This document shows, in pieces, positions 28,098 through 33,476 of a stretch of 64,000 nucleotides of DNA; position 1 is the stretch's first letter; each line of letters begins with the position of its first letter. Source of the stretch: Trichosphaerium sp. ATCC 40318. Taxonomy: Eukaryota; Protista; Tubulinea. Below the pieces are notes generated by a model. It was not told where the DNA came from, made no database searches, and saw only the letters and a program-made list of their open reading frames with translations. Position numbers and translations under genes: made by a program. The DNA lies in the NCBI GenBank assembly GCA_038496445.1, contig JALMLS010000369.1, positions 62,001-126,000 on the forward strand, in the 5' to 3' direction.

Positions 28098-29054
28098 TCA
28101 GAAGTATATATGTTGTGCATTACCCAATGACTTAATACCACTGGCTGTTATGGCCTCACAATACCACAGGTGAATTGTGTGCACACCAGCCAATGCCTTC
28201 AAACCGTCATCTGACACATTTGTACTTGATAAATCAATCTCATGAACACCAGCCAAAGCTTTAATACCCTCATCTGTTATTTGCTCACAACCCATCAAGC
28301 CTATTTTGTATACACCAGCTAACACCTTGATACCTTCATCTGTTACATTGGGGCAAAACCGCACTTCAATGGTGTGCACACCAGATAACGCCTGTAAACC
28401 TGCATCTGACACAAGTGTACCTGATAAAGTAATCTCGTGCACACCAGCCAATGCCTTTATACCTTCATCAGTAATTAATTCACAATTCTGTATGCTGATA
28501 GCGTGCACACCAGCCAATGCCTTTAAGGCTTCATCTGTAACATCTGTTTCAGATAAGTCAATTTTATGCACTTTACCTAATGACTTGATGCCATTGTCTG
28601 TTACAAACTTACAGCAATTTAAACTGATAGAATGTACTCCTGAAATTGCCTTCAAACCTTTATCTGTCACATTTGTACAAGATAAATCAATCTCATGAAC
28701 ACCAGCCAATGCCTTAATACCCTCGTCAGTTATCAACTTACATTCCCACAAGGAAATAGTATGTACACCTGCAAGTAAGAGCAAGTGACTGTCATTTACC
28801 CAAGATTCAGCTAAAAATATTGCTGTGTTCCACAGCAATGGACTTCCAGAAAGAAGTTCTACTTCTTTTTCGCTTTTGACTCTTATTTCGCCATATCCAA
28901 TATGGGTGTGAATTATATCTCGCAATAAGATGCACGTTTGGGCTGCACGAAGGGTAAACGAGCCTTGTTTGAAAATATGAACTATTAATTCAACTGGGAG
29001 TGAGACCAGGTAGTATGGGCGTCTAGCACAAGTATCTGTGCTTTCTCCTTCCAT
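28098..29054 (-). CDS. Intronless F-box/LRR protein
   Basis: N-terminal LVSLPVELIVHIF F-box-like motif plus about 10 short LRRs of type GVHxIxLxxxxxTDEGIKALA. Confidence 0.85.
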   Translation of the reverse strand: MEGESTDTCARRPYYLVSLPVELIVHIFKQGSFTLRAAQTCILLRDIIHTHIGYGEIRVKSEKEVELLSGSPLLWNTAIFLAESWVNDSHLLLLAGVHTISLWECKLITDEGIKALAGVHEIDLSCTNVTDKGLKAISGVHSISLNCCKFVTDNGIKSLGKVHKIDLSETDVTDEALKALAGVHAISIQNCELITDEGIKALAGVHEITLSGTLVSDAGLQALSGVHTIEVRFCPNVTDEGIKVLAGVYKIGLMGCEQITDEGIKALAGVHEIDLSSTNVSDDGLKALAGVHTIHLWYCEAITASGIKSLGNAQHIYF

Positions 29055-29372
29055 TTCCTTACTAACAGCTCTAATGGCTACTCCGTTAGGCTTTGGTGCA
29101 GCAAGATATGCGTCAAGCCAGAAAAAAGACTAAACTATTATCACAAGTCAAATATTGTATTCTCAACAAACGTGATTCAACAGTCACTAAAAATAAACGC
29201 TCAAAGTCTAATAAATATGAAAACGATGCTGCCCATTCCAACGTTACAGCACGTACTGAGTCGAACAAGACATCACGACAATAAAAGTGTTCACATAACG
29301 GTTTTATCGTCCTCTTTCAAAGTGAACTTTTTTTTTTAAGTGGAGTCTTTTATTACAACACGTGAAGTTTAA

Positions 29373-31193
29373 ATGGCATCCAAATCACCTGGTAGCATTC
29401 TTCTTGATTTGCCATTAGACCTACTTGCACTAGTATGCTCTCATTTAACGTGGAAGCAAGTTTGTGTTTTGTCATCGTACGGGTTCAATTATCCTTTATA
29501 TTGCGTGTACATTAACGCTGTTGAAGCGTTTGTAGGGAATTAGTAACAATTTCAAAATCAAGCGGTTTCGTTCGCCCACAAATCCACGAGTGCATTGATT
29601 GCGCGTATGAGAACAAAGGGAGCGAAGTATTACAACTGCAGTTTGGGTTGTGGGGTACTTGGCGTTCACAGTGTATAAAAGAGCTTATTGTAGTTTAGGT
29701 AACGCTGTTGGCAAGTCTTTTTGGGATTGTCTAACTGCAGAACACTCAATAACGCCGGATGGCAGATTTAACAGCTTCTCAAAGCCGCTAATGGACAATA
29801 TCAATATTTACTACAACGAACAGCATCGTACGTTGCATCCGAGCACTAAAAACAACTTTTTTTACAAATGGCACGTGTGTACTCAACCACGCTTACTGAC
29901 AGGTACCTTTCTACCACGATGCGTGGCTGTACCCTCTGATGTAGTCATTGGCGAATCCCAACAATTGAACTGTGGAGATAGGTCCGTTTGACAAATAATG
30001 TCATCATAAGCACTTAAAGACAACGAAAAGGTATATGATGAACATGCCAAAACAAGAGTTTGATATTGAAGCAACAATGGATCTTTTGAGAAAACAATCC
30101 GAAGCATGCAATGCGCCAACTGCTATACAAATACTGTCTCACCTAGCAGAATCGATAGATTTAACAAGACTATGTGAAAGAGTATACGACACCTTTTGTC
30201 AGCTAGAAAAATTGTACATTACCTCAACACCAAAGTCATACAATGACTGGAACACAGGTATCCATACAAATGCTCACTATTTTTCTGTGCTAATTCGGAG
30301 TGCTAGGAAATACAATACAGAATGCTCATGTCATTTATGAGCTCAGTGATGCTGTACTACTTACGTCTCAACGCAAACTTTTTGAAATATGTGAGGATAC
30401 CCCGAATGGAATCAGAAATGATTGTCAACTTGTTGGTGCTTGCATGGCCGATTTGACTTCAATGTTTAGGTGGGCTGCAACTGGTGTTATTTCACTTTAC
30501 CTAACCAATACTTGACAGGTTTCCTAACCCAAAAGGAATGCGACAAAACTGGAGAAAAGTTCTCATGTCTTTGATGCCTTTCCCTAGACTCAAGTTTCTT
30601 GGTATCGGTAGTACATTAGCGTCAAGCGAAATACAATCACGTACGTATAATGTACCAGAATATAGATTAACGCAATTAATTAAGCGTTGTCTGTTGAAGA
30701 GTGCACTTCGTGTATTATGCGGAATGAAACTACTTTTTCTGATGCCACTGCTAAGATCCAACTTGCTAATAAGCTCAATGCATCTGCTGGATTGGCGCTT
30801 GTAAATTACCGTGGTAGCTTTAAAGATATTGAAAAAATACCAGATGCTATCAAAGCCCTCCAACAAACACTAGCGCCACCAGAAGATGCTTTCTCTGATA
30901 GTAATATTATACCTAACACTTGTCACGTGCCAAATATTTATACACGTGGTTCAGTATCATATATATTTAATTCTCAAGAGAGTGTATCTCCTATTACAAT
31001 GCTTAGAGATGCATACGAAGGGTACTCAGATAGACGAGAATCAGAAGTCACACAACAAATGAAAGGTAAAAAAAAGGTTTGCAATATGATTGTTGAACTG
31101 AACGTTATTTTTTTAGACGCAAGGTATGTACTTCAAGACTTTCCTGGTATGTACTATGGGTTTCAGCGAAACATGGACAATGGAAACGAATAA
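29373..31193 (+). CDS. F-box protein fused to a degenerate tubulin-like domain
   Basis: F-box: LLDLPLDLLALVCSHLTWKQVCVLSS|VCREL. Tubulin-like: [96 protein letters not shown]. Confidence 0.8.
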
Positions 31194-31446: not shown

Positions 31447-33476
31447 ATGTCACAAGAGGTTGAGCTTGAGCGTTCCGATCTGGATGGCCAACTGGCTTCA
31501 AGTCTGAACGAACCACTTGTCGGCGCACCTCTAACAAATAAAGGCTGGTTTCATCCAGATGGCATCGTTTTTCGGTACTGAACGGCTTTTTACCCTGAAA
31601 TGTCAAATTGCTTTTACCATGTGCCACAAAACGCTCTTTTCATTCGTTTTATGCGCTTACATAAACATTGAGGGTAACCATACTGCTTATTATTTCATCT
31701 GTCGCTTATGGCATTTACTTTCCGTATGATGAGCTCCAAACACTCTCCAAGGACCTCTGCGAGGTACTAGAAGCCCACAATACGTCCAATTTAAGTAACC
31801 AGTAACCTAGGATCTAAATATTGATAAAACACGTTTTGGCACTCTGTACTCAGTATGCAAGCCTTATCTTTTATCTGGTTAACGTAACAACAAGGTGTTC
31901 TCACTGCCGAACATAGTTCTCGTATTTTTCGGCGGGTGGCTTGCTGATAAGTTTGGTGAGAAGATCCTTTTTTTTTCTTTCAATTTTCCAGGGTAGCGTG
32001 AGAAAATTTCGCTGATTTTTACCAGGGCTAAACTGGTATGGTCTGTGCCTCTACTTGCTTACAATTATTGGGAATTTGATTGTTGCTATTGCTTCATATG
32101 TCCCTGTGGACTTTGCATTCTATGTGATGTGTGTTGGACGATTTATCTTCGGGTTTGTAACACGCCTTTTGTAGACTCTACAACTCTTTTTAAAACTGTG
32201 TAGAATAGGCGCAGAGTCGTTTAATGTAGTTAATACCGCAATGGTAGTCCGTTATTTTAACAAAACACCGTGGCTTGCAGCTGCATTTGGATTGAATTTG
32301 TCGCTATCTAGACTCGGTAGTTTTACTGCAATATCAACTGGTAGTATAATTGCAACGAATCTTGGATCATACAAATGGACACTGTGGACAGGTAGGAAGC
32401 AAAAGGCCCTGTGAACCTTCCTTATATATGCTAGGTGTTTTTTTGGGTTGTGCTTGCCTTGTGATCCAGTGCGCCTATATAGCTATGGACAACTACGCTA
32501 GTAAAATAGTTGTAAGGGAAGAGCCTAAAAGAGAAAAAATATCGTTCAGAGAAATCTTCTCTTTTGACATTAGGTTTGGATTTATAAGCCTTATAACTAT
32601 GCTATACTATTCTGGTGTACTACCTCTTGTATCTACAGCAAGGTAAACTCAAAGTGAAAAACTTATATAGTTTCTGAACATAATCTTTTTTTTTTTTAGT
32701 GACTTTCTTCAAGACGAGTTTGAGTTTTCTCCTGAGACTGCTGGTTTTTACTCAAGCTCTATCATACTATGTACTATAATATTATCACCATTTATGGGAA
32801 AGTTCACAGATTGGTTTGGACGTCGTCCATTTATACGTAAGTCACGTGGTCTAACACAAACTTAAAAGTTAAACACCTTCAGTAATTGCTGGTACAATTC
32901 TTGTAATGGCATCACATTTTGCTCTGGGATACTTACATACAATACATCCTGTTGTAAGCTTTATTGGTGTCGGGTAAGATCACGTGATTTTTATTATTAA
33001 TTAAAAGTTGTCAAATAGAGTGAGCTTCTCTTTGGTTCCAGCTTGTTTGTGGCCAATGGTACCACTTGTAATTGATGAGGAGAATATAGGAACAGCTTAT
33101 GGTTTGATGGTACATTGCAACTTTTTGTATTCTTTTCTGTGTTCTTTGTGTTTATGTTGAAATAGATAGCAATACAGAGTCTCGGATTGACGCTTAATAA
33201 TATCATCGTGACTGCTATTGCTCAAGGTATGTCATGTTGTCAGTAAGTTGTGTTTAAAAAATGATAGGAGACTCAAAAGCATCTGATGATCCTTGTACTG
33301 GTCCAGAGGATGAGTATCAGTGGCCAAGAGCTTTCTTGTATTTCGTAGCTCTTGATGCATTAACATTCATGGCTTGCATTTTGCTCGCTTTGATAGATTA
33401 CAGAAGAGGTAGCACATTGGCTAAAACAGCCAAAGAAACTGAAGATGATAATGACTTTGTAACACAAACAGATTAA
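31447..33476 (+). CDS. MFS transporter, MFSD1-like
   Basis: YGIYFPYD, FGTLYS|VFSLPNIVLVFFGGWLADKFG, VGRFIFG|IGAES, ILSPFMGKFTDWFGRR, LWPMV..IGTAYG. Confidence 0.85.

Follow-up and report, generated by a model that had tools for sequence, protein, structure and literature searches.

What might a cell gain from a tubulin-like protein that has lost the loop with which tubulins hold phosphate and that carries an F-box-like segment at its front? The question is raised by a nine-exon gene on the forward strand, at positions 29373-31193 of a 64,000-nucleotide stretch (hereafter, the window) of contig JALMLS010000369.1 from Trichosphaerium sp. ATCC 40318, a piece of DNA that is AT-rich (38% G+C), eukaryotic and endowed with short introns. 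F-boxes link substrates to SCF (Skp1-Cul1-F-box) ubiquitin ligases through Skp1, and GGGTGSG ([SAG]-G-G-T-G-[SA]-G, loop T4) is the phosphate-binding signature of tubulins. From the sequence alone, the initial annotation had read the locus as an F-box fused to a full-length pseudo-tubulin devoid of this signature, recruited by an E3 ligase to recognise its substrates. Our analysis establishes a real, expressed gene of this organism, whose residues 68-469 descend, to judge from the alignments, from a beta-tubulin paralogue predicted to have lost nucleotide binding. As for the reading as a whole, namely an SCF substrate receptor with a beta-tubulin-derived, nucleotide-free body as putative bait, we incline towards it by a modest balance.

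Transcript data first settle the gene structure. One contig of run X1 (1446 nt) and one of run X4 (1298 nt) match the exons with 0 mismatches, the former skipping all eight introns and the latter the first seven, up to the contig end at 31007; because they are intron-free, both are taken as RNA, a matter on which the run records are silent. These contigs start at 29352 and 29350, respectively, ~21 nt upstream of an ATG that is immediately preceded by an in-frame TAA. The introns are all GT-AG and 44-75 nt long, and the joints fall at 29476→29527, 29654→29699, 29827→29903, 29981→30031, 30257→30307, 30469→30519, 30640→30685, and 31065→31117, which confirms the junction exons and yields a spliced product of 469 residues from a 1.4-kb coding sequence. 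An alternative acceptor for intron 1 at 29535/29536 was rejected, as both contigs place it at 29526/29527, with a gain of residues VCR and an improved F-box. Furthermore, an open reading frame (ORF) annotated as 'type:complete' in the MMETSP data of the same strain (P0041, 469 aa; mRNA contig L119, 1457 nt) is identical to the spliced model letter for letter. P0041 is the second member of the 90% cluster of P0001, a 318-aa peptide (MMETSP0405, taxid 498012) from this marine amoeba that spans aa 152-469. The identity of P0041 to the model, together with the spliced contigs, therefore places the F-box and the tubulin-like exons on one transcript and in one ORF.

Expression is thus evident in data sets of 2015 and 2023. 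Two further runs of 2024 filed under a different organism label (X2 and X3) contain short pieces with 95-100% identity to the gene; the differences, among them 31021 G>A (Gly to Glu) and the silent 31034 A>G, are too few for a selection test. Intron 3 (29828-29902, 75 nt) happens to keep the reading frame and to contain no stop codon, and its retention would add 25 residues to the H1-S2 loop region; it is spliced out in both transcript contigs. The protein segments quoted in the initial annotation are all found in the spliced product, that is, a 27-residue stretch at aa 73-99, a 10-residue stretch at aa 164-173, SHLAESIDL at aa 183-191, LTSMFRFP...MPFPRLKF at aa 270-303, and SVSYIFNS at aa 407-414.

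The claim of a full-length, tubulin-colinear body behind the F-box was likewise borne out. Residues 68-469 run colinearly with beta-tubulin, starting at beta residue 3 and reaching about residue 430, with a similarity well beyond what chance would give: a phmmer search of the Protein Data Bank (PDB) with P0041 returned an E value of 1.3e-19 (73.7 bits), the 60 best matches all being beta-tubulin chains. Parts of the gene behave alike in PDB searches: the open frame made up of exon 3, the in-frame intron 3 and exon 4 matched beta 14-54 (E 5.6e-6), and, independently of this match, P0001 hit beta 114-383 (E 1.4e-9). Twenty full-length beta-tubulin ORFs were retrieved from metagenome contigs by scanning for a beta-tubulin motif taken from the P0001 alignment, and 19 of them were used (two had identical ends). 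A hidden Markov model (HMM) of these 19 sequences gave the spliced product a score of 84.3 bits, divided between two colinear segments (aa 68-130 on beta 3-66 and aa 159-414 on beta 113-371). Identity amounted to 23-26% over ~380-400 residues in tblastn alignments to beta-tubulins, with E values down to 3e-21, and to about 21% overall with respect to the beta consensus; 49 columns show no variation among the 20 aligned sequences, of which this protein is one.

Phmmer scores further set the canonical beta-tubulins (63-68 bits) apart from alpha-tubulins (27-28 bits) and from L101, a divergent tubulin (22.7 bits). The alpha set consisted of two full-length proteins from contaminant contigs in bacterial assemblies, and gamma-tubulin entered this subfamily test only through the PDB ranking. 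A maximum-likelihood tree of alpha-tubulins, beta-tubulins and the one divergent tubulin recovered the alpha and beta clades, with the protein joining the node between them; because its branch measures ~10 substitutions per site, the tree gives no placement. The protein is closer to beta- than to alpha-tubulin, and the case for its descent from beta-tubulin is made by this difference in scores together with the ranking of PDB matches.

Domain profiles delimit how far the likeness goes. Pfam Tubulin (PF00091) fell short of its cut-off of 33 with 26.7 bits, with only profile positions 1-53 of 190 matched, and Tubulin_C (PF03953) found no match in the protein; in the HMMER check proposed with the initial annotation, neither tubulin family thus reached its cut-off, and the F-box profile PF00646 exceeded its own on aa 1-70 alone and not on the whole protein (see below). 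Pfam scans exon by exon gave nothing for any exon, a search of PDB with exon 8 alone was also blank, and Pfam was blank on P0001 despite its significant phmmer match in PDB; the single-exon queries are short, and their blank results do not imply absence. Collectively, the protein fails the tests of a tubulin proper (signature, Pfam cut-offs and nucleotide contacts), yet it is clearly tubulin-derived.

Which elements of tubulin were lost and which were kept? We addressed this with a MAFFT alignment to the 19 beta-tubulins and a table of identity per region, the roles of loops and residues in nucleotide contact being known from established tubulin structures. The body begins within exon 2 (29527-29654), which encodes the final F-box helix, an 18-residue linker, S1 and the first half of T1. 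In T1, GQCGNQ of beta-tubulin is GLWGNA here, and the positions of G75, G78 and N79 are kept in the alignment. The MREI autoregulation motif, N-terminal in beta-tubulin, corresponds to SEVL (aa 67-70), which is internal behind the F-box. Exon 3 (29699-29827; aa 78-120) specifies H1 and the H1-S2 loop and is the best-kept part. As deduced from the alignment and the joints, exon 4 (29903-29981) encodes S2 and S3 and holds the position of a 20-residue deletion of T2-H2, in which DLEPG and about 15 further residues are gone.

Exon 5 (30031-30257) covers the replaced T3 loop, H3, S4, the T4 remnant, H4, S5 and the T5 remnant. In the initial annotation, DLEPG and GAGNNWAKG were both said to be missing; this stands for the former, but GAGNNWAKG (T3) is not deleted, as a longer unrelated loop takes its place. 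The reported replacement of GGGTGSG was upheld by both the HMMER and MAFFT alignments, which set SHLAESIDL (30137-30163; aa 183-191) at the position of SLGGGTGSGMG; AESIDL thus stands for the T4 signature, three residues shorter and with every glycine gone. The acidic residues of T5 are also lost, the segment reading TPKSYNDWNTGN. Of the base contacts, N204 has become Q, and the segment around Y222 is missing.

Downstream, exon 6 (30307-30469) encodes H5, S6, H6, H7 and the T7 start, and exon 7 (30519-30640) the T7 loop, H8, S7 (MPFPRLKF at 30574-30597) and an M loop shortened by 3 residues. Exon 8 (30685-31065) accounts for the C-terminal (intermediate) domain from H9 to S10 and the start of H11, which lacks 8 residues at AFLHWYTG of beta-tubulin. 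Exon 9 (31117-31193) ends the protein with an H12-like helix and the stop codon; the acidic tail of beta-tubulin is absent, and the C-terminus reads ...RNMDNGNE. Identity to the beta consensus is highest in S1-T1-H1 (43%), S7 with PFPRL (42%), H7 (33%), T7-H8 (32%) and the H1-S2 loop (32%), and lowest in H11 (4%), H4-S5 (8%), S4-T4 (11%) and H10 (11%). This pattern fits a protein that would have retained the core of the fold and lost the nucleotide pocket.

The N-terminal segment is probably an F-box. Exon 1 (29373-29476), defined by the sequence and the X1 and X4 contigs, provides the start codon and F-box helices 1-2 (aa 1-34); the domain itself (29400-29569; aa 10-49), as delimited by Pfam and a local HMM, is interrupted by intron 1 (29477-29526). 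On aa 1-70 alone, PF00646 matched aa 10-49 with 23.6 bits (E 4.6e-5; cut-off, 20.5 bits), covering profile positions 1-40 of 43 in P0041; the related F-box-like profile PF12937 gave 18.7-20.4 bits against a cut-off of 24.3. The local HMM was built from ten F-boxes, each from a relative of the F-box-LRR (leucine-rich repeat) gene next door, and all ten match Pfam F-box at E ≤1 (best, 4.2e-12). It scored the spliced N-terminus at 11.3 bits over aa 11-51, a value that none of 2000 shuffles attained (maximum, 8.9), and the alignment runs on into a G-Y/F motif located just behind the F-box in the family of this F-box-LRR gene. Behind the 18-residue linker, the 402-residue tubulin-like body makes up the separate domain that follows the F-box. 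A tblastn search of the 64-kb window with the F-box of this protein revealed no other close copy.

Is such a gene likely to be functional? At this base composition, the chance that a 469-codon ORF stays open is ~3e-14, and its integrity despite ~10 substitutions per site argues for function. The same conclusion is favoured by the eight intact and used introns, the expression in two studies and a confident tubulin-like single-sequence model of this exact protein in the ESM Atlas (predicted template-modelling score, pTM, 0.73), whose nearest clusters are named 'Tubulin beta chain' (template-modelling score, TM, 0.77; aa 59-469). Language-model features of P0001 fall among clusters of the tubulin/FtsZ superfamily with scores of 0.83-0.89, which serve as leads only. 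The shared transcript, the tubulin-fold match and the transcription of the locus with an intact ORF run counter to the three outcomes that the initial annotation had named as fatal to its reading.

The mechanism that we propose combines both halves of the protein, and we regard this putative SCF receptor, baited with a tubulin-like body, as plausible. The F-box would dock on Skp1 and thereby on Cul1-Rbx1. The tubulin-like body could presumably neither bind GTP nor polymerise and would therefore, in our proposal, be the part that binds the substrate: to some natural partner, this bait would still resemble beta-tubulin, and the partner would be captured and ubiquitinated. Given the descent of the body from beta-tubulin, the most natural candidates are recognisers of beta-tubulin, that is, unpaired alpha-tubulin, cofactors or chaperones that handle beta-tubulin, and microtubule-associated proteins. 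The proposal is at its weakest in naming the partner, and its most specific version, in which the inactive beta-tubulin copy would bind free alpha-tubulin or a beta-specific cofactor, just as genuine beta-tubulin does, and hand it to SCF, we deem unlikely. If wired to SCF, the protein would be a natural degrader made from a decoy subunit, and a bait pairing with alpha-tubulin or a cofactor would amount to a previously unknown control of tubulin subunit balance in the amoeba. It would, if true, offer a new entry point to the removal of unpaired tubulin subunits and the regulation of tubulin cofactors. Few eukaryotic proteins are as conserved as the tubulins, and, to our knowledge, a tubulin fold with lost nucleotide binding is rare.

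Several results weigh against this proposal. The F-box, described as clear in the initial annotation, is supported by the 23.6 bits on aa 1-70 but drops to a marginal 19.6 bits on the whole protein, below the PF00646 cut-off. Exon 1 alone (34 aa) found no match in Pfam or PDB, as intron 1 divides the domain, and hhalign aligned exon 1 only weakly to the ten Pfam-verified F-boxes (E 0.018 over 16 columns) owing to the same cut. Regarding the body, conservation peaks in the core (S1-H1, H7 and S7) without singling out the face that contacts alpha-tubulin, and H10 is among the most eroded regions; a tubulin partner is therefore not specifically supported. AlphaFold2 models built with beta-tubulin alignments are of low confidence (predicted local distance difference test, pLDDT, 48.6 for P0001; 51.3 with pTM 0.58 for P0041). 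The beta chains that Foldseek retrieved with these models (TM by query, 0.56-0.60 with P0041 and 0.41-0.45 with P0001) are not independent evidence, because the beta-tubulin alignment was the input; for the fold we therefore rely on the ESM Atlas model, which is free of that bias. Finally, no orthologue was found with which to gauge purifying selection by the ratio of non-synonymous to synonymous substitution rates.

The marginal F-box match lends itself to another explanation, fairly unlikely in our view although the best placed of those considered. Here the F-box would not serve a ligase for other substrates; it would make the pseudo-tubulin short-lived or tether Skp1 in a non-SCF complex, and the tubulin-like body would be the working part, acting for instance on tubulin cofactors, at microtubule ends or at a microtubule-organising centre. 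F-box proteins are known to have roles outside SCF, some of those in yeast tether Skp1 in such complexes, and the region of lateral contacts formed by S1-H1 (43%) and H1-S2 (32%) is unusually well kept. However, the surfaces that a polymer would need are eroded, with the plus-end loops T2-T5 lost, the M loop shortened and H11 partly deleted.

It is more improbable still that we are dealing with a young or drifting chimeric gene without selected function, the still expressed remnant of a duplicated beta-tubulin gene that would have captured an F-box exon. Relatives found only in this organism, the extreme divergence from the beta consensus (about 21% identity) and the poor AlphaFold models are what such a relic would predict. 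Nonetheless, 469 codons have stayed open across nine exons after ~10 substitutions per site, every splice site is intact and used, core fold elements and the 49 invariant columns are retained, the ESM model folds as tubulin (pTM 0.73), and expression recurs in the 2015 and 2023 data sets. A working, very divergent tubulin isotype with unusual nucleotide binding, which would enter microtubules and use its N-terminal extension as a targeting peptide, could account for the full-length colinearity with beta-tubulin and for G75, G78 and N79 of T1, but has very little probability in view of the lost T4 signature, the deleted T2-H2, the replaced T3, the missing T5 acidic residues and N204/Y222 contacts, and the failure of Pfam Tubulin (first 53 of 190 positions only) and Tubulin_C.

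Compared with known systems, the putative SCF receptor draws on two families. It shares with beta-tubulin the order of secondary-structure elements and keeps S1-H1, the H1-S2 loop, FRFP (T7), RK (H8) and PFPRL (S7), but differs by its 21-25% identity and a 67-residue N-terminal extension with the F-box. As in the SCF receptors FBXW, FBXL and FBXO, an N-terminal F-box of ~40 residues is followed by a separate domain, here putatively protein-binding, and the G-Y/F motif at the F-box end recurs in the F-box-LRR relatives of the neighbouring gene; unlike in other F-box proteins, the C-terminal domain is a predicted tubulin fold rather than WD40, LRR or another usual module. Among other eukaryotic proteins, Misato/DML1 likewise has a degenerate tubulin-like body, and its N-terminal segment shows weak similarity to the present protein. 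Identity with Misato was nevertheless rejected, since Misat_Tub_SegII scored 13.4 bits (E 0.1) against a cut-off of 26.5 and beta-tubulin is by far the closer match; moreover, Misato has no F-box. A literature search retrieved no paper on an F-box joined to a tubulin fold. This architecture of an F-box adaptor with a tubulin-fold partner is absent from the literature and protein collections searched, in line with the initial annotation, which knew of no characterised protein built in this way.

Relatives are detectable only in the Trichosphaerium lineage. Against 1.84 billion representative proteins, exon 8 retrieved P0001 as its sole relative (99% identity), P0001 and P0041 found only the protein itself among 5.8 billion proteins, and no relative was present in the viral contigs searched. 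Exon 8 also gave weak matches in 7-8 separate stretches of two long proteins (P0002, 5751 aa, E 3e-7; P0003, 1293 aa, E 2e-4), which probably reflect repeat or composition effects and not homology. The Trichosphaerium genome paper lists F-box among the enriched domains, notably in putative giant-virus transfers (PMC10521059). A giant-virus origin, considered in the light of that report, was rejected: the eight spliceosomal introns and the lack of a viral relative identify a resident gene. A separate scan of the viral contigs with an alpha-tubulin pattern also found nothing.

The gene lies next to a single-exon gene on the reverse strand (28098-29054) that is separate from it and encodes F-box-like (E 0.0018) and LRR_6 (E 5e-26) domains according to Pfam. 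The two are divergent, with a spacer of 318 bp (29055-29372). Many X1 and X4 contigs cover the LRR gene only partly and with 90-95% identity, which suggests that it is a member of a large paralogous family. On the other side, X3 contigs with spliced joints at 31573→31672 and 31852→31895 map to 31465-31956 of the window, just downstream of the tubulin-like gene, and another expressed gene therefore lies close by.

Some of the comparison sequences deserve mention in their own right. Three short contigs that might be mammalian, possibly human (L123, L126 and L127), were excluded from all comparisons. Contigs filed as bacterial under Shimia, Microbacterium, Devosia and other names (L120, L129 and L130, and also L122, L132 and L133) encode intron-free eukaryotic alpha-tubulin and are eukaryotic contamination of the respective assemblies. 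The divergent tubulin used above comes from metagenome contig L101, in which an uninterrupted 763-aa ORF on the forward strand (positions 102-2390) has a tubulin-like start, MKEVITIQVGQTGNQ, and shows ~30-35% identity to beta-tubulin, being much longer than it.

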